A stretch of 64,000 nt of DNA, taken from the NCBI GenBank assembly GCA_044892505.1, contig CM097882.1:19964001-20028000 (forward strand), read 5' to 3'. Below are positions 1 through 59,366 of the stretch, piece by piece; positions within the stretch are counted from its first letter, which is position 1; every line of letters starts with the position of its first letter. The position numbers were made by a program, and so were the translations under genes. The stretch is from Schmidtea nova (Eukaryota). Under the pieces are notes generated by a model, which was not told the DNA's origin, ran no database searches, and saw nothing but the letters and a program-made list of their open reading frames with translations.

Positions 1-3000
1 AATGCTAAGTAGCGGAAAAGATATGAAAGCTTTGCTAACAAGCGAAAAAGAAAGAATTGATAAAGAAAAGCATCGAGAATTAGAAAAGATCAGTATGGAA
101 TATTCAACTGACGCGCAACACTTGACTTTGGATGAAGCAATTGAAAAAGGTCTTGTAGACACAATGCGAGGAACGATACGAGATCCTATTTCTGGAAAAG
201 AAATTTCATTACAAGAAGCAATTGCAAAAGGAATAATCGACGCGGAAAATAGCGCAATATATGATGCAGAGAAAGGACAAACTGTGTCTCTTTCTGAAAT
301 GCTAAGGAGCGGAAAAGATATAAAAGCTTTGCTAACAAGCGAAAAAGAAAGAATTGATAAAGAAAAGCATGGAGAATTAGAAAAGATCAGTATGGAATAT
401 TCAACTGACGCGCAACACTTGACTTTGGATGAAGCAATTGAAAAAGGTCTTGTAGACACAATGCGAGGAACGATACGAGATCCTATTTCTGGAAAAGAAA
501 TTTCATTACAAGAAGCAATTGCAAAAGGAATAATCGACGCGGAAAATAGCGCAATATATGATGCAGAGAAAGGACAAACTGTGTCTCTTTCTGAAATGCT
601 AAGTAGCGGAAAAGATATGAAAGCTTTGCTAACAAGCGAAAAAGAAAGAATTGATAAAGAAAAGCATGGAGAATTAGAAAAGATCAGTATGGAATATTCA
701 ACTGGCGCGCAACACTTGACTTTGGATGAAGCCATTGAAAGAGGTCTTGTAGACACAATGCGAGGAACGATACGAGATCCTATTTCTGGAAAAGAAATTT
801 CATTACAAGAAGCAATTGCAAAAGGAATAATCGACGCGGAAAATAGCGCAATATATGATGCAGAGAAAGGACAAACTGTGTCTCTTTCTGAAATGCTAAG
901 TAGCGGAAAAGATATGAAAGCTTTGCTAACAAGCGAAAAAGAAAGAATTGATAAAGAAAAGCATGGAGAATTAGAAAAGATCAGTATGGAATATTCAACT
1001 GACGCGCAACACTTGACTTTGGATGAAGCAATTGAAAGAGGTCTTGTAGACACAATGCGAGGAACGATACGAGATCCTATTTCTGGAAAAGAAATTTCAT
1101 TACAAGAAGCAATTGCAAAAGGAATAATCGACGCGGAAAATAGCGCAATATATGATGCAGAGAAAGGACAAACTGTGTCTCTTTCTGAAATGCTAAGTAG
1201 CGGAAAAGATATGAAAGCTTTGCTAACAAGCGAAAAAGAAAGAATTGATAAAGAAAAGCATGGAGAATTAGAAAAGATCAGTATGGAATATTCAACTGAT
1301 GCGCAACACTTGACTTTGGATGAAGCAATTGAAAGAGGTCTTGTAGACACAATGCGAGGAACGATACGAGATCCTATTTCTGGAAAAGAAATTTCATTAC
1401 AAGAAGCAATTGCAAAAGGAATAATCGACGCGGAAAATAGCGCAATATATGATGCAGAGAAAGGACAAACTGTGTCTCTTTCTGAAATGCTAAGTAGCGG
1501 AAAAGATATGAAAGCTTTGCTAACAAGCGAAAAAGAAATAATTGTGAAAGAAAAGCATGGAGAATTAGAAAAGATCAGTATGGAATATTCAACTGACGCG
1601 CAACACTTGACTTTGGATGAAGCAATTGAAAAAGGTCTTGTAGACACAATGCGAGGAACGATACGAGATCCTATTTCTGGAAAAGAAATTTCATTACAAG
1701 AAGCAATTGCAAAAGGAATAATCGACGCGGAAAATAGCGCAATATATGATGCAGAGAAAGGACAAACTGTGTCTCTTTCTGAAATGCTAAGTAGCGGAAA
1801 AGATATGAAAGCTTTGCTAACAAGCGAAAAAGAAAGAATTGATAAAGAAAAGCATGGAGAATTAGAAAAGATCAGTATGGAATATTCAACTGACGCGCAA
1901 CACTTGACTTTGGATGAAGCCATTGAAAGAGGTCTTGTAGGCACAATGCGAGGAACGATACGAGATCCTATTTCTGGAAAAGAAATTTCATTACAAGAAG
2001 CAATTGCAAAAGGAATAATCGACGCGGAAAATAGCGCAATATATGATGCAGAGAAAGGACAAACTGTGTCTCTTTCTGAAATGCTAAGTAGCGGAAAAGA
2101 TATGAAAGCTTTGCTAACAAGCGAAAAAGAAAGAATTGATAAAGAAAAGCATGGAGAATTAGAAAAGATCAGTATGGAATATTCAACTGATGCGCAACAC
2201 TTGACTTTGGATGAAGCAATTGAAAGAGGTCTTGTAGACACAATGCGAGGAACGATACGAGATCCTATTTCTGGAAAAGAAATTTCATTACAAGAAGCAA
2301 TTGCAAAAGGAATAATCGACGCGGAAAATAGCGCAATATATGATGCAGAGAAAGGACAAACTGTGTCTCTTTCTGAAATGCTAAGTAGCGGAAAAGATAT
2401 GAAAGCTTTGCTAACAAGCGAAAAAGAAAGAATTGATAAAGAAAAGCATGGAGAATTAGAAAAGATCAGTATGGAATATTCAACTGATGCGCAACACTTG
2501 ACTTTGGATGAAGCAATTGAAAGAGGTCTTGTAGACACAATGCGAGGAACGATACGAGATCCTATTTCTGGAAAAGAAATTTCATTACAAGAAGCAATTG
2601 CAAAAGGAATAATCGACGCGGAAAATAGCGCAATATATGATGCAGAGAAAGGACAAACTGTGTCTCTTTCTGAAATGCTAAGTAGCGGAAAAGATATGAA
2701 AGCTTTGCTAACAAGCGAAAAAGAAAGAATTGATAAAGAAAAGCATGGAGAATTAGAAAAGATCAGTATGGAATATTCAACTGATGCGCAACACTTGACT
2801 TTGGATGAAGCCATTGAAAGAGGTCTTGTAGACACAATGCGAGGAACGATACGAGATCCTATTTCTGGAAAAGAAATTTCATTACAAGAAGCAATTGCAA
2901 AAGGAATAATCGACGCGGAAAATAGCGCAATATATGATGCAGAGAAAGGACAAACTGTGTCTCTTTCTGAAATGCTAAGTAGCGGAAAAGATATGAAAGC

Positions 3001-6000
3001 TTTGCTAACAAGCGAAAAAGAAAGAATTGATAAAGAAAAGCATGGAGAATTAGAAAAGATCAGTATGGAATATTCAACTGATGCGCAACACTTGACTTTG
3101 GATGAAGCAATTGAAAGAGGTCTTGTAGACACAATGCGAGGAACGATACGAGATCCTATTTCTGGAAAAGAAATTTCATTACAAGAAGCAATTGCAAAAG
3201 GAATAATCGACGCGGAAAATAGCGCAATATATGATGCAGAGAAAGGACAAACTGTGTCTCTTTCTGAAATGCTAAGTAGCGGAAAAGATATGAAAGCTTT
3301 GCTAACAAGCGAAAAAGAAAGAATTGATAAAGAAAAGCATGGAGAATTAGAAAAGATCAGTATGGAATATTCAACTGACGCGCAACACTTGACTTTGGAT
3401 GAAGTAATTGAAAAAGGTCTTGTAGACACAATGCGAGGAACGATACGAGATCCTATTTCTGGAAAAGAAATTTCATTACAAGAAGCAATTGCAAAAGGAA
3501 TAATCGACGCGGAAAATAGCGCAATATATGATGCAGAGAAAGGACAAACTGTGTCTCTTTCTGAAATGCTAAGTAGCGGAAAAGATATGAAAGCTTTGCT
3601 AACAAGCGAAAAAGAAAGAATTGATAAAGAAAAGCATGGAGAATTAGAAAAGATCAGTATGGAATATTCAACTGACGCGCAACACTTGACTTTGGATGAA
3701 GCAATTGAAAAAGGTCTTGTAGACACAATGCGAGGAACGATACGAGATCCTATTTCTGGAAAAGAAATTTCATTACAAGAAGCAATTGCAAAAGGAATAA
3801 TCGACGCGGAAAATAGCGCAATATATGATGCAGAGAAAGGACAAACTGTGTCTCTTTCTGAAATGCTAAGTAGCGGAAAAGATATGAAAGCTTTGCTAAC
3901 AAGCGAAAAAGAAAGAATTGATAAAGAAAAGCATGGAGAATTAGAAAAGATCAGTATGGAATATTCAACTGACGCGCAACACTTGACTTTGGATGAAGCC
4001 ATTGAAAGAGGTCTTGTAGGCACAATGCGAGGAACGATACGAGATCCTATTTCTGGAAAAGAAATTTCATTACAAGAAGCAATTGCAAAAGGAATAATCG
4101 ACGCGGAAAATAGCGCAATATATGATGCAGAGAAAGGACAAACTGTGTCTCTTTCTGAAATGCTAAGTAGCGGAAAAGATATGAAAGCTTTGCTAACAAG
4201 CGAAAAAGAAAGAATTGATAAAGAAAAGCATGGAGAATTAGAAAAGATCAGTATGGAATATTCAACTGATGCGCAACACTTGACTTTGGATGAAGCAATT
4301 GAAAGAGGTCTTGTAGACACAATGCGAGGAACGATACGAGATCCTATTTCTGGAAAAGAAATTTCATTACAAGAAGCAATTGCAAAAGGAATAATCGACG
4401 CGGAAAATAGCGCAATATATGATGCAGAGAAAGGACAAACTGTGTCTCTTTCTGAAATGCTAAGTAGCGGAAAAGATATGAAAGCTTTGCTAACAAGCGA
4501 AAAAGAAAGAATTGATAAAGAAAAGCATCGAGAATTAGAAAAGATCAGTATGGAATATTCAACTGACGCGCAACACTTGACTTTGGATGAAGCAATTGAA
4601 AAAGGTCTTGTAGACACAATGCGAGGAACGATACGAGATCCTATTTCTGGAAAAGAAATTTCATTACAAGAAGCAATTGCAAAAGGAATAATCGACGCGG
4701 AAAATAGCGCAATATATGATGCAGAGAAAGGACAAACTGTGTCTCTTTCTGAAATGCTAAGGAGCGGAAAAGATATAAAAGCTTTGCTAACAAGCGAAAA
4801 AGAAAGAATTGATAAAGAAAAGCATGGAGAATTAGAAAAGATCAGTATGGAATATTCAACTGACGCGCAACACTTGACTTTGGATGAAGCAATTGAAAAA
4901 GGTCTTGTAGACACAATGCGAGGAACGATACGAGATCCTATTTCTGGAAAAGAAATTTCATTACAAGAAGCAATTGCAAAAGGAATAATCGACGCGGAAA
5001 ATAGCGCAATATATGATGCAGAGAAAGGACAAACTGTGTCTCTTTCTGAAATGCTAAGGAGCGGAAAAGATATGAAAGCTTTGCTAACAAGCGAAAAAGA
5101 AAGAATTGATAAAGAAAAGCATGGAGAATTAGAAAAGATCAATATGGAATATTCAACTGATGCGCAACACTTCACTTTGGATGAAGCAATTGAAAGAGGT
5201 CTTGTAGACACAATGCGAGGAACGATACGAGATCCTATTTCTGGAAAAGAAATTTCATTACAAGAAGCAATTGCAAAAGGAATAATCGACGCGGAAAATA
5301 GCGCAATATATGATGCAGAGAAAGGACAAACTGTGTCTCTTTCTGAAATGCTAAGTAGCGGAAAAGATATGAAAGCTTTGCTAACAAGCGAAAAAGAAAG
5401 AATTGATAAAGAAAAGCATGGAGAATTAGAAAAGATCAGTATGGAATATTCAACTGATGCGCAACACTTCACTTTGGATGAAGCAATTGAAAGAGGTCTT
5501 GTAGACACAATGCGAGGAACGATACGAGATCCTATTTCTGGAAAAGAAATTTCATTACAAGAAGCAATTGCAAAAGGAATAATCGACGCGGAAAATAGCG
5601 CAATATATGATGCAGAGAAAGGACAAACTGTGTCTCTTTCTGAAATGCTAAGGAGCGGAAAAGATATGAAAGCTTTGCTAACAAGCGAAAAAGAAAGAAT
5701 TGATAAAGAAAAGCATGGAGAATTAGAAAAGATCAGTATGGAATATTCAACTGACGCGCAACACTTGACTTTGGATGAAGCAATTGAAAGAGGTCTTGTA
5801 GACACAATGCGAGGAACGATACGAGATCCTATTTCTGGAAAAGAAATTTCATTACAAGAAGCAATTGCAAAAGGAATAATCGACGCGGAAAATAGCGCAA
5901 TATATGATGCAGAGAAAGGACAAACTGTGTCTCTTTCTGAAATGCTAAGTAGCGGAAAAGATATGAAAGCTTTGCTAACAAGCGAAAAAGAAAGAATTGA

Positions 6001-9000: not shown

Positions 9001-12000
9001 CAGTATGGAATATTCAACTGACGCGCAACACTTGACTTTAGATGAAGCCATTGAAAGAGGTCTTGTAGACACAATGCGAGGAACGATACGAGATCCTATT
9101 TCTGGAAAAGAAATTTCATTACAAGAAGCAATTGCAAAAGGAATAATCGACGCGGAAAATAGCGCAATATATGATGCAGAGAAAGGACAAACTGTGTCTC
9201 TTTCTGAAATACTAAGGAGCGGAAAAGATATGAAAGCTTTGCTAACAAGCGAAAAAGAAAGAATTGATAAAGAAAAGCATGGAGAATTAGAAAAGATCAG
9301 TATGGAATATTCAACTGACGCGCAACACTTGACTTTGGATGAAGCAATTGAAAGAGGTCTTGTAGACACAATGCGAGGAACGATACGAGATCCTATTTCT
9401 GGAAAAGAAATTTCATTACAAGAAGCAATTGCAAAAGGAATAATCGACGCGGAAAATAGCGCAATATATGATGCAGAGAAAAGACAAACTGTGTCTCTTT
9501 CTGAAATGCTAAGTAGCGGAAAAGATATGAAAGCTTTGCTAACAAGCGAAAAAGAAAGAATTGATAAAGAGAAGCATGGAGAATTAGAAAAGATCAGTAT
9601 GGAATGTTCAACTGACGCGCAACACTTGACTTTGGATGAAGCAATTGAAAGAGGTCTTGTAGACACAATGCGAGGAACGATACGAGATCCAATTTCTGGA
9701 AAAGAAATTTCATTACAAGAAGCAATTGCAAAAGGAATAATCGACGCGGAAAATAGCGCAATATATGATGCAGAGAAAGGACAAACTGTGTCTCTTTCTG
9801 AAATGCCAAGGAGCAGAAAAGATATGAAAGCTTTGCTAACAAGCGAAAAAGAAAGAATTGATAAAGAAAAGCATGGAGAATTAGAAAAGATCAGTATGGA
9901 ATATTCAACTGACGCGCAACACTTGACTTTGGATGAAGCAATTGAAAGAGGTCTTGTAGACACAATGCGAGGAACGATACGAGATCCTATTTCTGGAAAA
10001 GAAATTTCATTACAAGAAGCAATTGCAAAAGGAATAATCGACGCGGAAAATAGCGCAATATATGATGCAGAGAAAGGACAAACTGTGTCTCTTTCTGAAA
10101 TGCTAAGGAGCGGAAAAGATATGAAAGCTTTGCTAAAAAGCGAAAAAGAAAGAATTGATAAAGAAAAGCATGGAGAATTAGAAAAGATCAGTATGGAATA
10201 TTCAACTGACGCGCAACACTTGACTTTAGATGAAGCAATTGAAAGAGGTCTTGTAGACACAATGCGAGGAACGATACGAGATCCTATTTCTGGAAAAGAA
10301 ATTTCATTACAAGAAGCAATTGCAAAAGGAATAATCGACGCGGAAAATAGCGCAATATATGATGCAGAGAAAGGACAAACTGTGTCTCTTTCTGAAATGC
10401 TAAGGAGCGGAAAAGATATGAAAGCTTTGCTAACAAGCGAAAAAGAAAGAATTGATAAAGAAAAGCATAGAGAATTAGAAAAGATCAGTATGGAATATTC
10501 AACTGACTCGCAACACTTGACTTTAGATGAAGCAATTGAAAGAGGTCTTGTAGACACAATGCGAAGAACGATACGAGATCCTATTTCTGGAAAAGAAATT
10601 TCATTACAAGAAGCAATTGCAAAAGGAATAATCGACGCGGAAAATAGCGCAATATATGATGCAGAGAAAGGACAAACTGTGTCTCTTTCTGAAATGCTAA
10701 GGAGCGGAAAAGATATGAAAGCTTTGCTAACAAGCGAAAAAGAAAGAATTGATAAAGAAAAGCATAGAGAATTAGAAAAGATCAGTATGGAATATTCAAC
10801 TGACGCGCAACACTTGACTTTGGATGAAGCAATTGAAAGAGGTCTTGTAGACACAATGCGAGGAACGATACGAGATCCAATTTCTGGAAAAGAAATTTCA
10901 TTACAAGAAGCAATTGCAAAAGGAATAATCGACGCGGAAAATAGCGCAATATATGATGCAGAGAAAGGACAAACTGTGTCTCTTTCTGAAATGCTAAGGA
11001 GCAGAAAAGATATGAAAGCTTTGCTAACAAGCGAAAAAGAAAGAATTGATAAAGAAAAGCATGGAGAATTAGAAAAGATCAGTATGGAATATTCAACTGA
11101 CGCGCAACACTTGACTTTGGATGAAGCAATTGAAAGAGGTCTTGTAGACACAATGCGAGGAACGATACGAGATCCTATTTCTGGAAAAGAAATTTCATTA
11201 CAAGAAGCAATTGCAAAAGGAATAATCGACGCGGAAAATAGCGCAATATATGATGCAGAGAAAGGACAAACTGTGTCTCTTTCTGAAATGCTAAGGAGCG
11301 GAAAAGATATGAAAGCTTTGCTAAAAAGCGAAAAAGAAAGAATTGATAAAGAAAAGCATGGAGAATTAGAAAAGATCAGTATGGAATATTCAACTGACGC
11401 GCAACACTTGACTTTAGATGAAGCAATTGAAAGAGGTCTTGTAGACACAATGCGAGGAACGATACGAGATCCTATTTCTGGAAAAGAAATTTCATTACAA
11501 GAAGCAATTGCAAAAGGAATAATCGACGCGGAAAATAGCGCAATATATGATGCAGAGAAAGGACAAACTGTGTCTCTTTCTGAAATGCTAAGGAGCGGAA
11601 AAGATATGAAAGCTTTGCTAACAAGCGAAAAAGAAAGAATTGATAAAGAAAAGCATAGAGAATTAGAAAAGATCAGTATGGAATATTCAACTGACTCGCA
11701 ACACTTGACTTTAGATGAAGCAATTGAAAGAGGTCTTGTAGACACAATGCGAAGAACGATACGAGATCCTATTTCTGGAAAAGAAATTTCATTACAAGAA
11801 GAAATTGCAAAAGGAATAATCGACGCGGAAAATAGCGCAATATATGATGCAGAGAAAGGACAAACTGTGTCTCTTTCTGAAATGCTAAGGAGCGGAAAAG
11901 ATATGAAAGCTTTGCTAACAAGCGAAAAAGAAAGAATTGATAAAGAAAAGCATAGAGAATTAGAAAAGATCAGTATGGAATATTCAGCTGACGCGCAACA

Positions 12001-15000
12001 CATCACTTTGGATGAAGCAATTGAAAGAGGTCTTGTAGACACAATGCGAGAAACGATACGAGATCCTATTTCTGGAAAAGAAATTTCATTACAAGAAGCA
12101 ATTGCAAAAAGAATAATCGACGCGGAAAATAGCGCAATATATGATGCAGAGAAAGGACAAACTGTGTCTCTTTCTGAAATACTAAGGAGCGGAAAAGATA
12201 TGAAAGCTTTGCTAACAAGCGAAAAAGAAAGAATTGATAAAGAAAAGCATGGAGAATTAGAAAAGTTCAGTATGGATTATTCAACTGACGCGCAACACTT
12301 GACCCTGGATGAAGCAATTGAAAGAGGTCTTGTAGACACAATGCGAGGAACGATACGAGATCCTATTTCTGGAAAAGAAATTTCATTACAAAAAGCAATT
12401 GCAAAAGGAATAATCGACGCGGAAAATAGCGCAATATATGATGCAGAGAAAGGACAAACTGTGTCTCTTTCTGAAATGCTAAGGAGCGGAAAAGATATGA
12501 AAGCTTTGCTAACAAGCGAAAAAGAAAGAATTGATAAAGAAAAGCATAGAGAATTAGAAAAGATCAGTATGGAATATTCAACTGATGCGCAACACTTGAC
12601 TTTGGATGAAGCAATTGAAAGAGGTCTTGTAGACACAATGCGAGGAACGATACGAGATCCTATTTCTGGAAAAGAAATTTCATTACAAGAAGCAATTGCA
12701 AAAGGAATAATCAACGCGGAAAATAGCGCAATATATGATGCAGAGAAAGGACAAACTGTGTCTCTTTCTGAAATGCTAAGGAGCGGAAAAGATATGAAAG
12801 CTTTGCTAACAAGCGAAAAAGAAAGAATTGATAAAGAAAAGCATGGAGAATTAGAAAAGATCAGTATGGAATATTCAACTGACGCGCAACACTTGACTTT
12901 GGATGAAGCAATTGAAAGAGGTCTTGTAGACACAATGCGAGGAACGATACGAGATCCTATTTCTGGAAAAGAAATTTCATTACAAGAAGCAATTGCAAAA
13001 GGAATAATCGACGCGGAAAATAGCGCAATATATGATGCAGAGAAAGGACAAACTGTGACTCTTTCTGAAATGCTAAGGAGCGGAAAAGATATGAAAGCTT
13101 TGCTAACAAGCGAAAAAGAAATAATTGTGAAAGAAAAGCATGGAGAATTAGAAAAGATCAGTATGGAATATTCAACTGACGCGCAACACTTGACTTTGGA
13201 TGAAGCAATTGAAAGAGGTCCTGTAGACACAATGCGAGGAAAGATGCGAGATCCTATTTCTGGAAAAGAAATTTCATTACAAGAAGCAATTGCAAAAGGA
13301 ATAATCGACGCGGAAAATAGCGCAATATATGATGCAGAGAAAGGACAAACTGTGTCTCTTTCTGAAATGCTAAGGAGCGGAAAAGATATGAAAGCTTTGC
13401 TAACAAGCGAAAAAGAAATAATTGTGAAAGAAAAGCATGGAGAATTAGAAAAGATCAGTATGGAATATTCAACTGACGTGCAACACTTGACTTTGGATGA
13501 AGCAATTGAAAGAGGTCTTGTAGACACAATGCGAGGAACGATACGAGATCCTATTTCTGGAAAAGAAATTTCATTACAAGAAGCAATTGCAAAAGGAATA
13601 ATCGACGCGGAAAATAGCGCAATATATGATGCAGAGAAAGGACAAACTGTGTCTCTTTCTGAAATGCTAAGGAGCGGAAAAGATATGAAAGCTTTGCTAA
13701 CAAGCGAAAAAGAAAGAATTGATAAAGAAAAGCTTGAAGAATTAGAAAAGATCAGTATGGAATATTCAACTGATGCGCAACACTTGACTTTGGATGAAGC
13801 AATTGAAAGAGGTCTTGTAGACACAATGCGAGGAACGATACGAGATCCTATTTCTGGAAAAGAAATTTCATTACAAAAAGCAATTGCAAAAGGAATAATC
13901 GACGCGGAAAATAGCGCAATATATGATGCAGAGAAAGGACAAACTGTGTCTCTTTCTGAAATGCTAAGGAGCGGAAAAGATATGAAAGCTTTGCTAACAA
14001 GCGAAAAAGAAAGAATTGATAAAGAAAAGCATAGAGAATTAGAAAAGATCAGTATGGAATATTCAACTGATGCGCAACACTTGACTTTGGATGAAGCAAT
14101 TGAAAGAGGTCTTGTAGACACAATGCGAGGAACGATACGAGATCCCATTTCTGGAAAAGAAATTTCATTACAAGAAGCAATTGCAAAAGGAATAATCGAC
14201 GCGGAAAATAGCGCAATATATGATGCAGAGAAAGGACAAACTGTGACTCTTTCTGAAATGCTAAGGAGCGGAAAAGATATGAAAGCTTTGCTAACAAGCG
14301 AAAAAGAAATAATTGTGAAAGAAAAGCATGGAGAATTAGAAAAGATCAGTATGGAATATTCAACTGACGCGCAACACTTGACTTTGGATGAAGCAATTGA
14401 AAGAGGTCCTGTAGACACAATGCGAGGAAAGATGCGAGATCCTATTTCTGGAAAAGAAATTTCATTACAAGAAGCAATTGCAAAAGGAATAATCGACGCG
14501 GAAAATAGCGCAATATATGATGCAGAGAAAGGACAAACTGTGTCTCTTTCTGAAATGCTAAGGAGCGGAAAAGATATGAAAGCTTTGCTAACAAGCGAAA
14601 AAGAAATAATTGTGAAAGAAAAGCATGGAGAATTAGAAAAGATCAGTATGGAATATTCAACTGACGTGCAACACTTGACTTTGGATGAAGCAATTGAAAG
14701 AGGTCTTGTAGACACAATGCGAGGAACGATACGAGATCCTATTTCTGGAAAAGAAATTTCATTACAAGAAGCAATTGCAAAAGGAATAATCGACGCGGAA
14801 AATAGCGCAATATATGATGCAGAGAAAGGACAAACTGTGTCTCTTTCTGAAATGCTAAGGAGCGGAAAAGATATGAAAGCTTTGCTAACAAGCGAAAAAG
14901 AAAGAATTGATAAAGAAAAGCTTGAAGAATTAGAAAAGATCAGTATGGAATATTCAACTGATGCGCAACACTTGACTTTGGATGAAGCAATTGAAAGAGG

Positions 15001-27000: not shown

Positions 27001-30000
27001 GAAAGGACAAACTGTGTCTCTTTCTGAAATACTAAGGAGCGGAAAAGATATGAAAGCTTTGCTAACAAGCGAAAAAGAAAGAATTGATAAAGAAAAGCAT
27101 GGAGAATTAGAAAAGATCAGTATGGAATATTCAACTGACGCGCAACACTTGACTTTGGATGAAGCAATTGAAAGAGGTCCTGTAGACACAATGCGAGGAA
27201 AGATGCGAGATCCTATTTCTGGAAAAGAAATTTCATTAGAAGAAGCAATTGCAAAAGGAATAATCGACGCGGAAAATAGCGCAATATATGATGCAGAGAA
27301 AGGACAAACTGTGTCTCTTTCTGAAATGCTAAGGAGCGGAAAAGATATGAAAGCTTTGCTAACAAGCGAAAAAGAAATAATTGTGAAAGAAAAGCATGGA
27401 GAATTAGAAAAGATCAGTATGGAATATTCAACTGACGTGCAACACTTGACTTTGGATGAAGCAATTGAAAGAGGTCTTGTAGACACAATGCGAGGAACGA
27501 TACGAGATCCTATTTCTGGAAAAGAAATTTCATTACAAGAAGCAATTGCAAAAGGAATAATCGACGCGGAAAATAGCGCAATATATGATGCAGAGAAAGG
27601 ACAAACTGTGTCTCTTTCTGAAATACTAAGGAGCGGAAAAGATATGAAAGCTTTGCTAACAAGCGAAAAAGAAAGAATTGATAAAGAAAAGCATGGAGAA
27701 TTAGAAAAGATCAGTATGGAATATTCAACTGACGCGCAACACTTGACTTTGGATGAAGCAATTGAAAGAGGTCTTGTAGACACAATGCGAGGAACGATAC
27801 GAGATCCTATTTCTGGAAAAGAAATTTCATTACAAGAAGCAATTGCAAAAGGAATAATCGACGCGGAAAATAGCGCAATATATGATGCAGAGAAAGGACA
27901 AACTGTGACTCTTTCTGAAATGCTAAGGAGCGGAAAAGATATGAAAGCTTTGCTAACAAGCGAAAAAGAAAGAATTGATAAAGAGAAGCATGGAGAATTA
28001 GAAAAGATCAGTATGGAATTTTCAACTGACGCACAACACTTGACTTTGGATGAAGCAATTGAAAGAGGTCTTGTAGACACAATGCGAGGAACGATACGAG
28101 ATCCTATTTCTGGAAAAGAAATTTCATTACAAGAAGCAATTGCAAAAGGAATAATCGACGCGGAAAATAGCGCAATATATGATGCAGAGAAAGGACAAAC
28201 TGTGTCTCTTTCTGAAATGCTAAGGAGCGGAAAAGATATGAAAGCTTTGCTAACAAGCGAAAAAGAAAGAATTGATAAAGAAAAGCATGGAGAATTAGAA
28301 AAGATCAGTATGGAATATTCAACTGACGCGCAACACTTGACTTTGGATGAAGCAATTGAAAGAGGTCTTGTAGACACAATGCGAAGAACGATACGAGATC
28401 CTATTTCTGGAAAAGAAATTTCATTACAAGAAGCAATTGCAAAAGGAATAATCGACGCGGAAAATAGCGCAATATATGATGCAGAGAAAGGACAAACTGT
28501 GACTCTTTCTGAAATGCTAAGGAGCGGAAAAGATATGAAAGCTTTGCTAACAAGCGAAAAAGAAATAATTGTGAAAGAAAAGCATGGAGAATTAAAAAAG
28601 ATCAGTATGGAATATTCAACTGACGCGCAACACTTGACTTTGGATGAAGCAATTGAAAGAGGTCTTGTAGACACAATGCGAGGAACGATACGAGATCCTA
28701 TTTCTGGAAAAGAAATTTCATTACAAGAAGCAATTGCAAAAGGAATAATCGACGCGGAAAATAGCGCAATATATGATGCAGAGAAAGGACAAACTGTGTC
28801 TCTTTCTGAAATGCTAAGGAGCGGAAAAGATATGAAAGCTTTGCTAACAAGCGAAAAAGAAATAATTGTGAAAGAAAAGCATGGAGAATTAGAAAAGATC
28901 AGTATGGAATATTCAACTGACGTGCAACACTTGACTTTGGATGAAGCAATTGAAAGAGGTCTTGTAGACACAATGCGAGGAACGATACGAGATCCTATTT
29001 CTGGAAAAGAAATTTCATTACAAGAAGCAATTGCAAAAGGAATAATCGACGCGGAAAATAGCGCAATATATGATGCAGAGAAAGGACAAACTGTGTCTCT
29101 TTCTGAAATGCTAAGGAGCGGAAAATATATGAAAGCTTTGCTAACAAGCGAAAAAGAAAGAATTGATAAAGAAAAGCATGGAGAATTAGAAAAGTTAAGT
29201 ATGGAATATTTAACTGACGTGCAACACTTGACTTTGGATGAAGCAATTGAAAGAGGTCTTGTAGACACAATGCGAGGAACGATACGAGATCCTATTTCTG
29301 GAAAAGAAATTTCATTACAAGAAGCAATGTCAAAAGGAATAATCGACGCGGAAAATAGCGCAATATATGATGCAGAGAAAGGACAAACTGTGTCTCTTTC
29401 TGAAATACTAAGGAGCGGAAAAGATATGAAAGCTTTGCTAACAAGCGAAAAAGAAAGAATTGATAAAGAAAAGCATGGAGAATTAGAAAAGATCAGTATG
29501 GAATATTCAACTGACGCGCAACACTTGACTTTGGATGAAGCAATTGAAAGAGGTCTTGTAGACACAATGCGAGGAACGATACGAGATCCTATTTCTGGAA
29601 AAGAAATTTCATTACAAGAAGCAATGTCAAAAGGAATAATCGACGCGGAAAATAGCGCAATATATGATGCAGAGAAAGGACAAACTGTGTCTCTTTCTGA
29701 AATACTAAGGAGCGGAAAAGATATGAAAGCTTTGCTAACAAGCGAAAAAGAAAGAATTGATAAAGAAAAGCATGGAGAATTAGAAAAGATCAGTATGGAA
29801 TATTCAACTGACGCGCAACACTTGACTTTGGATGAAGCAATTGAAAGAGGTCTTGTAGACACAATGCGAGGAACGATACGAGATCCTATTTCTGGAAAAG
29901 AAATTTCATTACAAGAAGCAATTGCAAAAGGAATAATCGACGCGGAAAATAGCGCAATATATGATGCAGAGAAAGGACAAACTGTGACTCTTTCTGAAAT

Positions 30001-33000
30001 GCTAAGGAGCGGAAAAGATATGAAAGCTTTGCTAACAAGCGAAAAAGAAATAATTGTGAAAGAAAAGCATGGAGAATTAAAAAAGATCAGTATGGAATAT
30101 TCAACTGACGCGCAACACTTGACTTTGGATGAAGCAATTGAAAGAGGTCCTGTAGACACAATGCGAGGAAAGATGCGAGATCCTATTTCTGGAAAAGAAA
30201 TTTCATTAGAAGAAGCAATTGCAAAAGGAATAATCGACGCGGAAAATAGCGCAATATATGATGCAGAGAAAGGACAAACTGTGTCTCTTTCTGAAATGCT
30301 AAGGAGCGGAAAAGATATGAAAGCTTTGCTAACAAGCGAAAAAGAAATAATTGTGAAAGAAAAGCATGGAGAATTAGAAAAGATCAGTATGGAATATTCA
30401 ACTGACGTGCAACACTTGAATTTGGATGAAGCAATTGAAAGAGGTCTTGTAGACACAATGCGAGGAACGATACGAGATCCAATTTCTGGAAAAGAAATTT
30501 CATTACAAGAAGCAATTGCAAAAGGAATAATCGACGCGGAAAATAGCGCAATATATGATGCAGAGAAAGGACAAACTGTGTCTCTTTCTGAAATGCTAAG
30601 GAGCGGAAAAGATATGAAAGCTTTGCTAACAAGCGAAAAAGAAAGAATTGATAAAGAAAAGCTTGGAGAATTAGAAAAGATCAGTATGGAATATTCAACT
30701 GATGCGCAACACTTGACTTTGGATGAAGCAATTGAAAGAGGTCTTGTAGACACAATGCGAGGAACGATACGAGATCCTATTTCTGGAAAAGAAATTTCAT
30801 TACAAGAAGCAATGTCAAAAGGAATAATCGACGCGGAAAATAGCGCAATATATGATGCAGAGAAAGGACAAACTGTGTCTCTTTCTGAAATACTAAGGAG
30901 CGGAAAAGATATGAAAGCTTTGCTAACAAGCGAAAATGAAAGAATTGATAAAGAAAAGCATGGAGAATTAGAAAAGATCAGTATGGAATATTCAACTGAC
31001 GCGCAACACTTGACTTTGGATGAAGCAATTGAAAGAGGTCTTGTAGACACAATGCGAGGAACGATACGAGATCCTATTTCTGGAAAAGAAATTTCATTAC
31101 AAGAAGCAATTGCAAAAGGAATAATCGACGCGGAAAATAGCGCAATATATGATGCAGAGAAAGGACAAACTGTGACTCTTTCTGAAATGCTAAGGAGCGG
31201 AAAAGATATGAAAGCTTTGCTAACAAGCGAAAAAGAAAGAATTGATAAAGAAAAGCATGGAGAATTAGAAAAGTTTAGTATGGAATATTTAACTGACGTG
31301 CAACACTTGACTTTGGATGAAGCAATTGAAAGAGGTCTTGTAGACACAATGCGAGGAACGATGCGAGATCCTATTTCTGGAAAAGAAATTTCATTACAAG
31401 AAGCAATGTCAAAAGGAATAATCGACGCGGAAAATAGCGCAATATATGATGCAGAGAAAGGACAAACTGTGTCTCTTTCTGAAATGCTAAGGAGCGGAAA
31501 AGATATGAAAGCTTTGCTAACAAGCGAAAAAGAAAGAATTGATAAAGAGAAGCATGGAGAATTAGAAAAGATCAGTATGGAATTTTCATCTGACGCACAA
31601 CACTTGACTTTGGATGAAGCAATTGAAAGAGGTCTTGTAGACACAATGCGAGGAACGATACGAGATCCTATTTCTGGAAAAGAAATTTCATTACAAGAAG
31701 CAATTGCAAAAGGAATAATCGAGGCGGAAAATAGCGCAATATATGATGCAGAGAAAGGACAAACTGTGTCTCTTTCTGAAATGCTAAGGAGCGGAAAAGA
31801 TATGAAAGCTTTGCTAACAAGCGAAAAAGAAAGAATTGATAAAGAAAAGCATGGAGAATTAGAAAAGATCAGTATGGAATATTCAACTGACGCGCAACAC
31901 TTGACTTTGGATGAAGCAATTGAAAGAGGTCTTGTAGACACAATGCGAAGAACGATACGAGATCCTATTTCTGGAAAAGAAATTTCATTACAAGAAGCAA
32001 TTGCAAAAGGAATAATCGACGCGGAAAATAGCGCAATATATGATGCAGAGAAAGGACAAACTGTGTCTCTTTCTGAAATGCTAAGGAGCGGAAAAGATAT
32101 GAAAGCTTTGCTAACAAGCGAAAAAGAAAGAATTGATAAAGAAAAGCATGGAGAATTAGAAAAGATCAGTATGGAATATTCAACTGATGCGCAACACTTG
32201 ACTTTGGATGAAGCAATTGAAAGAGGTCTTGTAGACACAATGCGAGGAACGATACGAGATCCTATTTCTGGAAAAGAAATTTCATTACAAGAAGCAATGT
32301 CAAAAGGAATAATCGACGCGGAAAATAGCGCAATATATGATGCAGAGAAAGGACAAACTGTGTCTCTTTCTGAAATACTAAGGAGCGGAAAAGATATGAA
32401 AGCTTTGCTAACAAGCGAAAATGAAAGAATTGATAAAGAAAAGCATGGAGAATTAGAAAAGATCAGTATGGAATATTCAACTGACGCGCAACACTTGACT
32501 TTGGATGAAGCAATTGAAAGAGGTCTTGTAGACACAATGCGAGGAACGATACGAGATCCTATTTCTGGAAAAGAAATTTCATTACAAGAAGCAATTGCAA
32601 AAGGAATAATCGACGCGGAAAATAGCGCAATATATGATGCAGAGAAAGGACAAACTGTGACTCTTTCTGAAATGCTAAGGAGCGGAAAAGATATGAAAGC
32701 TTTGCTAACAAGCGAAAAAGAAAGAATTGATAAAGAAAAGCATGGAGAATTAGAAAAGTTTAGTATGGAATATTTAACTGACGTGCAACACTTGACTTTG
32801 GATGAAGCAATTGAAAGAGGTCTTGTAGACACAATGCGAGGAACGATGCGAGATCCTATTTCTGGAAAAGAAATTTCATTACAAGAAGCAATGTCAAAAG
32901 GAATAATCGACGCGGAAAATAGCGCAATATATGATGCAGAGAAAGGACAAACTGTGTCTCTTTCTGAAATACTAAGGAGCGGAAAAGATATGAAAGCTTT

Positions 33001-36000
33001 GCTAACAAGCGAAAAAGAAAGAATTGATAAAGAAAAGCATGGAGAATTAGAAAAGATCAGTATGGAATATTCAACTGACGCGCAACACTTGACTTTGGAT
33101 GAAGCAATTGAAAGAGGTCTTGTAGACACAATGCGAGGAACGATACGAGATTCTATTTCTGGAAAAGAAATTTCATTACAAGAAGCAATTGCAAAAGGAA
33201 TAATCGACGCGGAAAATAGCGCAATATATGATGCAGAGAAAGGACAAACTCTGACTCTTTCTGAAATGCTAAAGAGCGGAAAAGATATGAAAGCTTTGCT
33301 AACAAGCGAAAAAGAAAGAATTGATAAAGAAAAGCATGGAGAATTAGAAAAGATCAGTATGGAATTTTCAACTGACGCACAACACTTGACTTTGGATGAA
33401 GCAATTGAAAGAGGTCTTGTAGACACAATGCGAGGAACGATACGAGATCCTATTTCTGGAAAAGAAATTTCATTACAAGAAGCAATTGCAAAAGGAATAA
33501 TCGACGCGGAAAATAGCGCAATATATGATGCAGAGAAAGGACAAACTGTGTCTCTTTCTGAAATGCTAAGGAGCGGAAAAGATATGAAAGCTTTGCTAAC
33601 AAGCGAAAAAGAAAGAATTGATAAAGAAAAGCATGGAGAATTAGAAAAGATCAGTATGGAATATTCAACTGACGCGCAACACTTGACTTTGGATGAAGCA
33701 ATTGAAAGAGGTCTTGTAGACACAATGCGAAGAACGATACGAGATCCTATTTCTGGAAAAGAAATTTCATTACAAGAAGCAATTGCAAAAGGAATAATCG
33801 ACGCGGAAAATAGCGCAATATATGATGCAGAGAAAGGACAAACTGTGTCTCTTTCTGAAATACTAAGGAACGGAAAAGATATGAAAGCTTTGCTAACAAG
33901 CGAAAAAGAAAGAATTGATAAAGAAAAGCATGGAGAATTAGAAAAGATCAGTATGGAATATTCAACTGACGCGCAACACTTGACTTTGGATGAAGCAATT
34001 GAAAGAGGTCTTGTAGACACAATGCGAGGAACGATACGAGATCCTATTTCTGGAAAAGAAATTTCATTACAAGAAGCAATTGCAAAAGGAATAATCGACG
34101 CGGAAAATAGCGCAATATATGATGCAGAGAAAGGACAAACTGTGTCTCTTTCTGAAATGCTAAGGAGCGGAAAAGATATGAAAGCTTTGCTAACAAGCGA
34201 AAAAGAAAGAATTGATAAAGAAAAGCATGGAGAATTAGAAAAGATCAGTATGGAATATTCAACTGACGCGCAACACTTGACTTTGGATGAAGCAATTGAA
34301 AGAGGTCTTGTAGACACAATGCGAAGAACGATACGAGATCCTATTTCTGGAAAAGAAATTTCATTACAAGAAGCAATTGCAAAAGGAATAATCGACGCGG
34401 AAAATAGCGCAATATATGATGCAGAGAAAGGACAAACTGTGTCTCTTTCTGAAATACTAAGGAGCGGAAAAGATATGAAAGCTTTGCTAACAAGCGAAAA
34501 AGAAAGAATTGATAAAGAAAAGCATGGAGAATTAGAAAAGATCAGTATGGAATATTCAACTGACGCGCAACACTTGACTTTGGATGAAGCAATTGAAAGA
34601 GGTCTTGTAGACACAATGCGAGGAACGATACGAGATCCTATTTCTGGAAAAGAAATTTCATTACAAGAAGCAATTGCAAAAGGAATAATCGACGCGGAAA
34701 ATAGCGCAATATATGATGCAGAGAAAGGACAAACTGTGTCTCTTTCTGAAATGCTAAGGAGCGGAAAAGATATGAAAGCTTTGCTAACAAGCGAAAAAGA
34801 AAGAATTGATAAAGAGAAGCATGGAGAATTAGAAAAGATCAGTATGGAATTTTCATCTGACGCACAACACTTGACTTTGGATGAAGCAATTGAAAGAGGT
34901 CTTGTAGACACAATGCGAGGAACGATACGAGATCCTATTTCTGGAAAAGAAATTTCATTACAAGAAGCAATTGCAAAAGGAATAATCGAGGCGGAAAATA
35001 GCGCAATATATGATGCAGAGAAAGGACAAACTGTGTCTCTTTCTGAAATGCTAAGGAGCGGAAAAGATATGAAAGCTTTGCTAACAAGCGAAAAAGAAAG
35101 AATTGATAAAGAAAAGCATGGAGAATTAGAAAAGATCAGTATGGAATATTCAACTGACGCGCAACACTTGACTTTGGATGAAGCAATTGAAAGAGGTCTT
35201 GTAGACACAATGCGAAGAACGATACGAGATCCTATTTCTGGAAAAGAAATTTCATTACAAGAAGCAATTGCAAAAGGAATAATCGACGCGGAAAATAGCG
35301 CAATATATGATGCAGAGAAAGGACAAACTGTGTCTCTTTCTGAAATGCTAAGGAGCGGAAAAGATATGAAAGCTTTGCTAACAAGCGAAAAAGAAAGAAT
35401 TGATAAAGAAAAGCATGGAGAATTAGAAAAGATCAGTATGGAATATTCAACTGATGCGCAACACTTGACTTTGGATGAAGCAATTGAAAGAGGTCTTGTA
35501 GACACAATGCGAGGAACGATACGAGATCCTATTTCTGGAAAAGAAATTTCATTACAAGAAGCAATGTCAAAAGGAATAATCGACGCGGAAAATAGCGCAA
35601 TATATGATGCAGAGAAAGGACAAACTGTGTCTCTTTCTGAAATACTAAGGAGCGGAAAAGATATGAAAGCTTTGCTAACAAGCGAAAATGAAAGAATTGA
35701 TAAAGAAAAGCATGGAGAATTAGAAAAGATCAGTATGGAATATTCAACTGACGCGCAACACTTGACTTTGGATGAAGCAATTGAAAGAGGTCTTGTAGAC
35801 ACAATGCGAGGAACGATACGAGATCCTATTTCTGGAAAAGAAATTTCATTACAAGAAGCAATTGCAAAAGGAATAATCGACGCGGAAAATAGCGCAATAT
35901 ATGATGCAGAGAAAGGACAAACTGTGACTCTTTCTGAAATGCTAAGGAGCGGAAAAGATATGAAAGCTTTGCTAACAAGCGAAAAAGAAAGAATTGATAA

Positions 36001-39000
36001 AGAAAAGCATGGAGAATTAGAAAAGTTAAGTATGGAATATTTAACTGACGTGCAACACTTGACTTTGGATGAAGCAATTGAAAGAGGTCTTGTAGACACA
36101 ATGCGAGGAACGATGCGAGATCCTATTTCTGGAAAAGAAATTTCATTACAAGAAGCAATGTCAAAAGGAATAATCGACGCGGAAAATAGCGCAATATATG
36201 ATGCAGAGAAAGGACAAACTGTGTCTCTTTCTGAAATACTAAGGAGCGGAAAAGATATGAAAGCTTTGCTAAGAAGCGAAAAAGAAAGAATTGATAAAGA
36301 AAAGCATGGAGAATTAGAAAAGATCAGTATGGAATATTCAACTGACGCGCAACACTTGACTTTGGATGAAGCAATTGAAAGAGGTCTTGTAGACACAATG
36401 CGAGGAACGATACGAGATTCTATTTCTGGAAAAGAAATTTCATTACAAGAAGCAATTGCAAAAGGAATAATCGACGCGGAAAATAGCGCAATATATGATG
36501 CAGAGAAAGGACAATCTCTGACTCTTTCTGAAATGCTAAAGAGCGGAAAAGATATGAAAGCTTTGCTAACAAGCGAAAAAGAAAGAATTGATAAAGAAAA
36601 GCATGGAGAATTAGAAAAGATCAGTATGGAATTTTCAACTGACGCACAACACTTGACTTTGGATGAAGCAATTGAAAGAGGTCTTGTAGACACAATGCGA
36701 GGAACGATACGAGATCCTATTTCTGGAAAAGAAATTTCATTACAAGAAGCAATTGCAAAAGGAATAATCGACGCGGAAAATAGCGCAATATATGATGCAG
36801 AGAAAGGACAAACTGTGTCTCTTTCTGAAATGCTAAGGAGCGGAAAAGATATGAAAGCTTTGCTAACAAGCGAAAAAGAAAGAATTGATAAAGAAAAGCA
36901 TGGAGAATTAGAAAAGATCAGTATGGAATATTCAACTGACGCGCAACACTTGACTTTGGATGAAGCAATTGAAAGAGGTCTTGTAGACACAATGCGAAGA
37001 ACGATACGAGATCCTATTTCTGGAAAAGAAATTTCATTACAAGAAGCAATTGCAAAAGGAATAATCGACGCGGAAAATAGCGCAATATATGATGCAGAGA
37101 AAGGACAAACTGTGTCTCTTTCTGAAATACTAAGGAACGGAAAAGATATGAAAGCTTTGCTAACAAGCGAAAAAGAAAGAATTGATAAAGAAAAGCATGG
37201 AGAATTAGAAAAGATCAGTATGGAATATTCAACTGACGCGCAACACTTGACTTTGGATGAAGCAATTGAAAGAGGTCTTGTAGACACAATGCGAGGAACG
37301 ATACGAGATCCTATTTCTGGAAAAGAAATTTCATTACAAGAAGCAATTGCAAAAGGAATAATCGACGCGGAAAATAGCGCAATATATGATGCAGAGAAAG
37401 GACAAACTGTGTCTCTTTCTGAAATGCTAAGGAGCGGAAAAGATATGAAAGCTTTGCTAACAAGCGAAAAAGAAAGAATTGATAAAGAAAAGCATGGAGA
37501 ATTAGAAAAGATCAGTATGGAATATTCAACTGACGCGCAACACTTGACTTTGGATGAAGCAATTGAAAGAGGTCTTGTAGACACAATGCGAAGAACGATA
37601 CGAGATCCTATTTCTGGAAAAGAAATTTCATTACAAGAAGCAATTGCAAAAGGAATAATCGACGCGGAAAATAGCGCAATATATGATGCAGAGAAAGGAC
37701 AAACTGTGTCTCTTTCTGAAATACTAAGGAGCGGAAAAGATATGAAAGCTTTGCTAACAAGCGAAAAAGAAAGAATTGATAAAGAAAAGCATGGAGAATT
37801 AGAAAAGATCAGTATGGAATATTCAACTGACGCGCAACACTTGACTTTGGATGAAGCAATTGAAAGAGGTCTTGTAGACACAATGCGAAGAACGATACGA
37901 GATCCTATTTCTGGAAAAGAAATTTCATTACAAGAAGCAATTGCAAAAGGAATAATCGACGCGGAAAATAGCGCAATATATGATGCAGAGAAAGGACAAA
38001 CTGTGTCTCTTTCTGAAATACTAAGGAACGGAAAAGATATGAAAGCTTTGCTAACAAGCGAAAAAGAAAGAATTGATAAAGAAAAGCATGGAGAATTAGA
38101 AAAGATCAGTATGGAATATTCAACTGACGCGCAACACTTGACTTTGGATGAAGCAATTGAAAGAGGTCTTGTAGACACAATGCGAGGAACGATACGAGAT
38201 CCTATTTCTGGAAAAGAAATTTCATTACAAGAAGCAATTGCAAAAGGAATAATCGACGCGGAAAATAGCGCAATATATGATGCAGAGAAAGGACAAACTG
38301 TGTCTCTTTCTGAAATGCTAAGGAGCGGAAAAGATATGAAAGCTTTGCTAACAAGCGAAAAAGAAAGAATTGATAAAGAAAAGCATGGAGAATTAGAAAA
38401 GATCAGTATGGAATATTCAACTGACGCGCAACACTTGACTTTGGATGAAGCAATTGAAAGAGGTCTTGTAGACACAATGCGAAGAACGATACGAGATCCT
38501 ATTTCTGGAAAAGAAATTTCATTACAAGAAGCAATTGCAAAAGGAATAATCGACGCGGAAAATAGCGCAATATATGATGCAGAGAAAGGACAAACTGTGT
38601 CTCTTTCTGAAATACTAAGGAGCGGAAAAGATATGAAAGCTTTGCTAACAAGCGAAAAAGAAAGAATTGATAAAGAAAAGCATGGAGAATTAGAAAAGAT
38701 CAGTATGGAATATTCAACTGACGCGCAACACTTGACTTTGGATGAAGCAATTGAAAGAGGTCTTGTAGACACAATGCGAAGAACGATACGAGATCCTATT
38801 TCTGGAAAAGAAATTTCATTACAAGAAGCAATTGCAAAAGGAATAATCGACGCGGAAAATAGCGCAATATATGATGCAGAGAAAGGACAAACTGTGTCTC
38901 TTTCTGAAATGCTAAGGAGCGGAAAAGATATGAAAGCTTTGCTAACAAGCGAAAAAGAAAGAATTGATAAAGAAAAGCATGGAGAATTAGAAAAGATCAG

Positions 39001-42000: not shown

Positions 42001-42785
42001 GACTTTGGATGAAGCAATTGAAAGAGGTCTTGTAGACACAATGCGAGGAACGATACGAGATCCTATTTCTGGAAAAGAAATTTCATTACAAGAAGCAATT
42101 GCAAAAGGAATAATCGACGCGGAAAATAGCGCAATATATGATGCAGAGAAAGGACAAACTGTGTCTCTTTCTGAAATGCTAAGGAGCGGAAAAGATATGA
42201 AAGCTTTGCTAACAAGCGAAAAAGAAAGAATTGATAAAGAAAAGCATGGAGAATTAGAAAAGATCAGTATGGAATATTCAACTGACGCGCAACACTTGAC
42301 TTTGGATGAAGCAATTGAAAGAGGTCTTGTAGTTACAATACGAGGAACGATACGAGATCCTATTTCTGGAAAAGAAATTTCAATACAAGAAGCAATAGGA
42401 AAAGGAGTAATCGACGCGGAAAATAGCGCAATATATGATGCAGAGAAAGGACAAACTGTGTCTCTTTTTGAAATGCTAAGTAGCGGAAAAGATATGAAAG
42501 CTTTGCTAACTAGCGAAAAAGAAAGAATTGATAAAGAAAAGCATGGAGAATTAGAAAAGATCAGTATGGAATATTCAACTGACGCGCAACACTTGACTTT
42601 GGATGAAGCAATTGAAAGAGGTCTTGTAGACACAATGCGAGGAACGATACGAGATCCTATTTCTGGAAAAGAAATTTCAATACAAGAAGCAATAGGAAAA
42701 GGAGTAATCGACGCGGAAAATAGCGCAATATATGATGCAGAGAAAGGACAAACTGTGTCTCTTTCTGAAATGCTAAGGAGCGGAA
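1..42785 (+). repeat. Coding tandem array: 144 complete 297-bp (99-aa) units plus a short partial unit
   Basis: The ATG at 2 recurs at 42770 (offset 42768 = 144 x 297), so there is no net indel. Units differ only by scattered substitutions. Confidence 0.97.
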
Positions 42786-42934
42786 TGGATATTTGTTCTC
42801 ATCTTTTGAAATCTGAATTTTTTGAATATGACAATTTTGATAATTCTAATAACGCCTCAAATAATGAATCTAATATTCTATCAAATCTACATCATTTGTC
42901 ACATTTTGCAGAAGACTCTAATGCTCATTTTGAG
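1..42934 (+). CDS. Giant plakin-repeat exon (at least 42,934 nt; acceptor lies upstream of the window)
   Basis: ORF 2..42958 is open throughout. The repeats contain [13 protein letters not shown]...[22 protein letters not shown], a plectin/plakin-repeat signature. A strong donor GAG|GTAAGT lies at 42934/42935. The Met at 2 is an internal repeat Met, not a true start. Confidence 0.88.
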
Positions 42935-52413: not shown

Positions 52414-52682
52414 GTCTGCTTATATTTCCGAATCGGTAAATTATGATAAGCAGCCATCGGATCCGATTATTAGCTCTTCTTTTTAACACGTGACAGGCGA
52501 TAAGCAAAAAATTCATTTAAAATCACAACACTGATTAGTGTAAGGGTTCGCAACCCTGAGGAGGGGAATTCGAACCAGGGGTTTGTTGGATGATGTTATT
52601 TAAAATTACTAAAATTAGTTTTCAAGTTCCAAATCAGTAGGAGGCTATGAGCGGTCCAGATCCACTACCCCCATGTGTGTAT

Positions 52683-55523: not shown

Positions 55524-55755
55524 AGGTGGGTCAAAGGTGATAGGTAAATGGTACTATATTATTACATGAGATGCGATGGGTGAAAATCGATAGGCGAATG
55601 ACGCTATCTTGGGATGTGATGGGACAAAGCTGATAGGTAAATGGTGTTATATTATTACATGGAATGCGATGGGTCAAAACTGATAAGCAAATGACACTAT
55701 CTTCTAACATGGGATGCGATGAGTCAAAACTGATAGAATAATGGCGGTATCATTG
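55524..55755 (+). repeat. Degenerate 43-50-bp tandem repeat, about 5 units (mirror ~62704-62935)
   Basis: Recurrent GATGGGTCAAA..TGATAGG.AAATG...TAT..T..ACATG..ATGC, with a related copy near 55335-55390. Confidence 0.75.
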
Positions 55756-58220: not shown

Positions 58221-58440
58221 ATTATGAAAGTGTACGGAAATATTGTGAAATGTATGTTCAAGTAAGAAGCTTTCAAACCTATCACAATTTGTGTCTGTTA
58301 CTGGATAAAACTGAAACATTGTGATAATGTAATTGATCAAAGATCATACCGGGTTATGTTAATGAATAATGTTGATTGTAGCAATAATAACTATATGTGT
58401 GAGTAATAAGCTTTGGCAGATAAAAACCATCACAAAAGAT

Positions 58441-58539
58441 GTTCTGCTAATAAAGGTTCTGCTAATAAAGGTTCTGCTAATAAAGGTTCTGCTAATAAAG
58501 GTTCTGCTAATAAAGGTTCTGCTAATAAAGGTTCTGCTA
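58441..58539 (+). repeat. Perfect 15-bp minisatellite (GTTCTGCTAATAAAG)x6 plus partial; mirror 59920-60018
   Basis: Directly visible; it is the source of the IKVLL and RTFIS ORFs. Confidence 0.97.
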
Positions 58540-58581
58540 GAAAGGTTCATTATTCACTTTAACAAATAATAAACATTTAAA

Positions 58582-59132: not shown

Positions 59133-59366
59133 TTTAAAAGGAGATAATGTTAGAAATAAAAGGAAATATATAATGGACGGTCTTAGTGGTGAGTCGAAAA
59201 CATAGTTGACTTGGTAATTTGCATATCGAAAATATTGCCATATTATTTGATTGCAATGGTTGTGACTATGAAATTTAGACAGTAATGTAAAAATTAATAC
59301 CTTAATTATGAGAATTCTATGTATTTATCCAAAACATATTTGAAAATTCATTAAAATATAAAAATA

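Follow-up and report, generated by a model that had tools for sequence, protein, structure and literature searches.

How an array with the repetitive build of a satellite can lie within a protein-coding exon, to which protein such an exon would belong, and by what events it grew are the questions raised by a stretch of 64,000 nucleotides of the Schmidtea nova genome (GenBank assembly GCA_044892505.1, contig CM097882.1, forward strand), hereafter the window. An initial annotation, made from the letters alone, had described positions 1-37888 of this window as a coding array of 297-bp units with nested higher-order repeats (HORs) of 3, 4, 5, 7, 11, 15 and 25 units, attributed to unequal crossing-over. 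Here, we followed these claims by repeat mapping, base-by-base comparison of the block copies, protein family and structure searches, and inspection of contigs from other samples. Taken together, our results indicate, with a probability of roughly 0.78, that a flatworm spectraplakin has this array as its plakin-repeat exon, in which a 99-residue unit was amplified to 198 copies, grown by in-register unequal exchange. Coordinates are given as positions within the 64-kb window (contig 19964001-20028000), negative numbers being upstream of it, and all features described are on the forward strand unless otherwise stated.

Extent and diversity of the array

Within the window, Tandem Repeats Finder detected one 297-bp array at 1-42792, with 144.1 copies, 98% matches and 0% indels. 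For the upstream extent, the 100 kb located 5' of the window were taken and walked back in register, and the units were then compared in a variant map. The full array runs from -16037 to 42768 and comprises 198 units, each of exactly 297 bp (99 aa), with zero indels over 58.8 kb; 54 of the units sit 5' of the window, and the part within it (units 54-197, at 1-42768) is delimited by Tandem Repeats Finder, the in-register walk, the variant map and a Pfam Plectin match (E = 7e-42). The array is thus present throughout the span 1-37888 originally proposed, which was too small to describe its true range. A 32-base pattern taken from the unit had 190 matches in the 1.25-Gb assembly, and 190/190 fell inside the array; therefore, it is a single-locus array free of stray haplotigs.

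The units are not equally uniform along the array, as the pairwise difference is 1.0-1.2% among units 1-80, the most uniform zone, and 2.1-2.5% in later zones. The edges are diverged, with 26 differences from the consensus in the first unit and the greatest diversity in the last zone and its units. Such less homogenised edge units are expected in arrays evolving by unequal exchange, and they are also seen in spider silk genes (PMC1885213).

A giant exon with a preserved reading frame

The whole array is traversed by a single open reading frame of the forward strand. Read from window base 2, the first stop is found at 42956-42958, and the stop-free stretch covers 59,634 bp, between -16678 and 42955. 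Within it, the array exon spans -16609 to 42934, that is, 59,544 nt or 19,848 codons, and one degenerate unit precedes the homogenised array at its 5' edge. The exon closes with a unique 3' tail (42769-42934), recognized in the sequence and its translation, whose last codon GAG ends at 42934 and is followed by the consensus 5' splice donor GTAAGT in phase 0 (GAG/GTAAGT, 42935-42940), so that the in-frame stop at 42956-42958 falls in the intron. On the other side, the acceptor sets the first exon base at -16609, also in phase 0; the donor of the preceding exon (-18414/-18413) and the acceptor of the next exon downstream (44229) are in the same phase. Since all flanking splice sites are in phase 0, either inclusion or skipping of the array exon keeps the frame.

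The substitutions among units were then considered with regard to this frame. From 115 distinct variants, 26 were synonymous, 89 nonsynonymous and none was a stop, where 24.3, 83.8 and 6.8, respectively, are expected from the observed substitution spectrum; the lack of stops (P = 0.0009) therefore indicates that the frame has been kept open. The variants are evenly spread over the three codon positions (39/39/37), with no excess of synonymous changes. In our reading, selection would preserve the open frame and hardly see a single missense change in 1 of 198 units. The placement of the array within a protein-coding exon, as claimed in the initial annotation, is thus supported by the frame, the phase-0 splice sites, the stop-free variants, the lack of indels and the Pfam Plectin match.

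Coding on the reverse strand was considered as well and rejected. One minus-strand frame contains only 13 stops in 43.5 kb (1-43500) and lacks both a family match and a splice context; this near-open frame is probably a by-product of the composition and repetition of the unit.

The unit matches the plakin-repeat family in sequence

In a comparison to the Pfam Plectin repeat (PF00681), four units score 141.4 bits (E = 7.3e-42), where the curated cut-off is 20.5, with one strong stretch per unit, and a sequence search of the PDB returned desmoplakin as its sole match. In protein-database searches, four units retrieved only distant plakin-repeat proteins with at most 29% identity, and one unit alone retrieved no match. 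Each unit consists of three short plakin motifs, spaced by 27 residues, plus a charged helical linker.

A canonical plakin repeat is about 38 aa long and folds as a beta-hairpin followed by two antiparallel helices, the repeats being packed as a globular domain of 4.5 repeats. We modelled three units with single-sequence AlphaFold (AF2), obtaining a predicted local distance difference test (pLDDT) of 73 and a predicted template modelling score (pTM) of 0.32. In this model, every unit forms a helix of around 30 residues, corresponding to the charged linker, and then a compact module of three motifs, each made of a hairpin and one short helix with the spacing of 27 aa. When the model was compared to the PDB with Foldseek, the top five rows were repeat domains of desmoplakin and envoplakin, and periplakin ranked 7 and 9. 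As far as the model can be trusted, the array might resemble beads joined by helices.

Gene context of the array exon

The exons surrounding the array were queried one at a time rather than as a joined spliced protein model. Upstream, an exon with a CH domain was found at -40434 to -40141 (38 bits, cut-off 26). A spliced relative, P0001, with 85% identity, maps to upstream exons at -35491 to -26184 and carries the Plectin, SH3_10 and Spectrin families in precomputed annotation (PF17902, PF00435) made on P0001 itself. The best database matches were distant, in agreement with a phylum that has been poorly sampled. Closer to the array, an older exon of diverged plakin repeats (1,355 aa) occupies -22418 to -18354; its matches to the array unit reach E = 4e-14. 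The product P0001 stops some 28 residues past its match to this older exon, which could represent a short isoform ending in plakin repeats, as VAB-10A or BPAG1e, or merely a truncated contig.

Downstream of the array, spectrin-repeat-like exons assigned to the same gene lie at 44229-52443, according to the list of open reading frames, the phase-0 acceptor at 44229 and Pfam Spectrin matches below the cut-off; searched singly, two of these exons score 21.7 and 20.6 bits against a cut-off of 29.9. The best GAS2 match of the genome (89 bits) is at contig positions 20055548-20055802 (+), 48.6 kb downstream and on the same strand, and from this position and strand it is presumed to encode the C-terminus of the same gene. 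With a CH domain, putative plakin-domain exons, plakin repeats, spectrin-like exons and a GAS2 match, the gene looks like a spectraplakin of the Shot, MACF1, dystonin or VAB-10 kind, as judged from sequence matches.

Other features were observed in the surrounding DNA. Four runs of N (131-188 bases) lie among the downstream exons, at 49105-49237, 50032-50219, 53149-53280 and 53293-53423. At an intronic dispersed repeat (45549-46000), the contig depth climbs from around 10-40 into the several hundreds or thousands, and loose ends and variant joints are numerous, in 4/4 of the samples described below. Putative transposase-like open frames and long AT-rich microsatellites, whose translation is poly-Ile, poly-Asn or poly-Leu whatever the frame, are found at -86670 to -84750, -83268 to -81700 and -37200 to -35700.

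Block duplications within the array

Each pair of coordinates cited in the initial annotation was compared base by base, and lists of differences were made per offset. All seven pairs were present at base level; the variants HRELE, GTM, ENER, KLEE and NGK were each found at both places named for them, and all duplication offsets correspond to whole numbers of 297-bp units. The largest event is a 25-unit (7,425-bp) duplication, with copy A at 19686-27179 and copy B at 27111-34604, with a run of 24 matching units and three differences in 7,494 bp (19969, 21928 and 24298), while differences are dense just beyond the block ends. The identity covers one period plus 69 bp (27111-27179), and this excess places the exchange point of the event inside 27111-27179. 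It falls within a chimeric joint unit (27028-27324), recognized from the variant map and the 69-bp overlap, whose 5' part is like the unit that ends copy B and whose 3' part is like the unit that starts copy A. Nested in copy B is the first copy (31410-34621) of an 11-unit (3,267-bp) duplication, followed by the second at 34677-37888, with 3 differences in 3,212 bp; setting aside a single change at 34622, the identity reaches 34752, that is, 3,343 bp or more than one period. The few private changes by which the copies were said to differ are thus found in both duplications.

Shorter blocks accompany these two. A 3-unit (891-bp) repeat of around 2.3 copies, at 36833-38910, overlaps the end of the 11-unit copy, and its segments 36833-38019 and 37724-38910 display 0 differences over 1.33 periods. 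A 4-unit (1,188-bp) repeat of around 2.6 copies occupies 12959-16027, with a run of 6 units and 1 difference over 12959-14839 (1.58 periods). The proposed 5-unit period was found only in part: between 23057 and 25545, a triple of rare units is repeated at offset 1485 (variant map and difference list), which is shared over 23057-24060, about 3.4 of 5 units, and not over the rest of the period. Similarly, the 15- and 7-unit periods were reduced to patches within 1-5058, consisting of 761 identical bp at offset 4455 (-157 to 603 and 4298 to 5058; 2.6 of 15 units) and 903 identical bp at offset 2079 (1547-2449 and 3626-4528; 3 of 7 units); neither periodicity was established, as a local shuffle within this low-diversity zone gave P = 0.078 for both, and these patches could be conversion tracts or remnants. 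Conversely, the array contains blocks that had been overlooked, namely a second, partial 4-unit repeat at 9808-11986 (9808-10798 and 10996-11986, 1 difference) and runs of 7 and 12 units upstream of the window, and its last five units show a weak 2-unit alternation.

When the order of units was shuffled, no run exceeded 3 units with at most one difference, compared to the 24 units observed, and recurring exact unit trigrams numbered 21 where 0.04 were expected. On this basis, the blocks of 25, 11, 4 and 3 units are taken as genuine duplications beyond chance, together with the partial one of 5 units. The term HOR is too strong for them. The contrast in identity typical of HORs is present, with 99.96% between blocks and around 98% between monomers, and the blocks represent nested segmental duplications; the many tandem copies of a satellite-type HOR are not seen, as the copy number is just 2-2.6 for most of them and no period is dominant.

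Order of events and proposed mechanism

Shared derived variants yield a consistent nested order of the duplications. The rare 5-unit patch, whose triple recurs in every later copy, occurs in copies A and B of the 25-unit block as well as in the 11-unit copy, and therefore the 5-unit event came first. Copy B gained a G at the paralogue of 24298, and this derived base is common to the second 11-unit copy, which places the 11-unit event after the 25-unit event. Finally, the 3-unit repeat, which extends over the end of the 11-unit copy, accounts for the change (34622 versus 37889) by which the 11-unit identity falls short of one full period, hence it was the last. The order is thus 5-unit, 25-unit, 11-unit and 3-unit.

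These observations agree with the unequal exchange originally invoked, with regard to the offsets in multiples of 297, the chimeric joint at 27028-27324 and the consistent nesting. In the mechanism we propose, misaligned units would undergo unequal homologous exchange in register, with sister chromatids or homologues as possible partners, whereby the array grows and is homogenised, and each event would duplicate or delete a whole number of units and leave one chimeric joint unit behind. With 198 units present, a missense change affecting one of them would be nearly without effect and would drift; a stop or a frameshift would deprive the protein of the spectrin rod and GAS2 domain predicted downstream, and thus be removed.

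Array size in independent samples

The representation of the array in other animals was assessed with the assembled (Logan) contigs of four DNA runs, corresponding to four samples of one study (X1-X4). Sample contigs span the array-flank boundary and the intron with 0 differences, and the mean word (k-mer) depth of the array contigs was 104-161x that of the flank in the four samples. For comparison with the reference, the ratio of array to flank depth was normalised to the mean multiplicity of 31-mers that these segments have in the assembly, giving 0.89 in X1, 1.07-1.10 in X2, 0.64-0.73 in X3 and 0.82-0.87 in X4, with a range of about 0.7-1.1 when length-weighted flank depths were computed by hand; contig depth is not copy number, and these ratios serve as a hint only. 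They support an array that comfortably exceeds a hundred units in independent animals, and hint that its length may vary between samples.

Two long palindromes, perfect throughout or around their centre, flank the gene. The downstream one, at 54459-64000, has arms at 54459-59092 and 59367-64000 with 0 mismatches and a 274-bp spacer, and extends beyond the end of the window; its place is within the presumed spectraplakin gene, 3' of the spectrin-like exons and 5' of the GAS2 match, and it could be real or a fold-back artefact of assembly. The upstream one, at -73378 to -61251 (around 12 kb), has no spacer, is free of mismatches near its centre (-67314/-67315) and contains 61 mismatches counted in all, mostly at the outer edge.

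Weighing of alternative explanations

Several observations weigh against a translated plakin-repeat exon grown by unequal exchange, and they bear on three alternatives. The array might have originated from a plakin-repeat exon and be a never-translated satellite within an intron, its open frame being a leftover of recent amplification. A ratio of nonsynonymous to synonymous change (dN/dS) of around 1 among the copies would fit untranslated DNA too, were the absence of stops luck; the even use of codon positions and the synonymous share at its neutral expectation point the same way, as does the lack of a close relative of the unit in protein databases. Also against our main reading, the Foldseek match to solved plakin repeat domains is not significant (best E = 0.003, TM score around 0.1). 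The runs holding the stretch are all DNA runs, with no RNA run among them, so that inclusion of the array exon in mRNA is a prediction from sequence. Nevertheless, we regard an untranslated satellite as improbable, considering that 6.8 stops were expected and none was found, that no indel occurred in 58.8 kb, that good splice sites of matching phase are present at both ends, and that the position equals that of an expressed plakin-repeat exon in Drosophila shot (PMC2173965). Translation of the whole 59.5-kb exon in some cells would add around 19,850 residues (~2.2 MDa) to an isoform of the protein, as a micrometre-scale segment varying in length between individuals, a reading that we propose tentatively, at clearly below even odds.

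The remaining alternatives accept a coding exon and concern how its blocks arose. Highly improbable, in our judgement, is that the 25- and 11-unit copies were created by the assembler from allelic haplotypes or false overlaps placed end to end, the true array being shorter, even though their 3 differences each are a level that may be allelic, in-register false overlaps come naturally in a tandem array, the palindromes may signal assembly problems nearby, and these 7.4-kb and 3.3-kb copies are known from the assembled sequence. The array is free of gaps, the closest N being at 49105, and the other contigs contain no second copy of it; the sharing of copy B's derived G by the 11-unit copy and the presence of the 5-unit patch in all copies agree with serial real events, independent samples reach 0.9-1.1x of the reference k-mer multiplicity, and a single long read easily covers the shorter blocks (3-5 units, 0.9-1.5 kb). 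If the blocks are real, replication slippage, template switching or gene conversion could have led to the same outcome as reciprocal unequal crossing-over. The short patches of 2-3 units at offsets 15, 7 and 18 resemble conversion tracts more than duplications, and one clean exchange does not explain the 11-unit joint, which requires one additional later change; tandem blocks with a single chimeric joint are, however, the classical product of unequal exchange, and we consider these other routes less likely, although one haplotype holds nothing to separate crossing-over from slippage or conversion. Unequal exchange between units in register is the mechanism we infer for the growth of this plakin-repeat exon.

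Implications and comparison with known systems

If the whole exon is translated, the protein would contain 198 small plakin modules linked in a chain by charged single helices, the array still exchanging units. In animals, the exon would then rank among the longest known to code for protein, and its product among the largest proteins, as a natural, length-polymorphic cytoskeletal spacer. If expressed, the gene would join the titin-class giants, and would represent an intracellular cytoskeletal linker evolving by the runaway tandem amplification observed in silks and mucins. The lack of stops and indels, set against neutral-looking missense changes, offers a clear illustration of selection that acts on the frame rather than on single units. 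Exons of this kind are prone to collapse or mis-annotation, and therefore this locus is a suitable test case for the quality of flatworm assemblies and gene models. Furthermore, planarians permit RNA interference, so that the function of a length-variable plakin-repeat rod would be open to direct test in them. Our literature searches found no paper connecting planarians and spectraplakins, and nothing relevant on giant exons with tandem repeats.

Mucins and Balbiani-ring genes are further examples of coding tandem arrays, and the largest human coding exons reach around 17-22 kb. From the concerted-evolution traits of coding arrays, an in-frame unit and diverged edges are seen here, and copy-number variation is hinted by contig depth only. 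Centromeric satellite HORs share with this array the monomers that are around 98% alike, the blocks that are more than 99.9% alike and the in-register exchange; in contrast, they are non-coding and reach tens to thousands of copies, whereas here the copies are 2-3, in separate zones, and the frame is open.

Among coding systems, the array exon sits exactly where Drosophila shot has its plakin-repeat exon, which is optional by splicing, 10,497 nt long and contains 33 diverged repeats not grouped in domains of 4.5 repeats (PMC2173965). As in Shot, MACF1b and dystonin, one large plakin-repeat exon appears to lie between the actin-binding and putative plakin domains and the presumed spectrin rod, and here it is phase-symmetric. 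Unlike that of Shot, it extends over 59,544 nt with 198 near-identical units of 99 aa (~594 short motifs), recent block duplications, a motif spacing of 27 aa instead of around 38, and a charged helical linker. Epiplakin (EPPK1) contains near-identical repeat domains in one exon, with intragenic copy-number variation in human and mouse (PMC8782857), and the present array resembles it in having near-identical plakin repeats within one exon. EPPK1 differs in that the whole gene is one exon, constituted only by full plakin repeat domains in 13-16 large units, while here an internal exon of a spectraplakin carries a much smaller module. The spider silk genes MaSp1 and MaSp2 display giant repetitive exons with higher-order repeats and a homogenised core, for which unequal crossing-over was inferred (PMC1885213), and share with this array the giant repetitive exon, the strong homogenisation and the less homogenised ends. 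Their exons are of 9-11 kb (PMC1885213) and encode secreted fibres of an unrelated protein family with a low-complexity motif, whereas the module described here is predicted to be folded and would belong to an intracellular linker. Thus, both the phenomenon and the gene family are already known, and what is unusual in this locus is the scale, with 198 units in a 59.5-kb exon.

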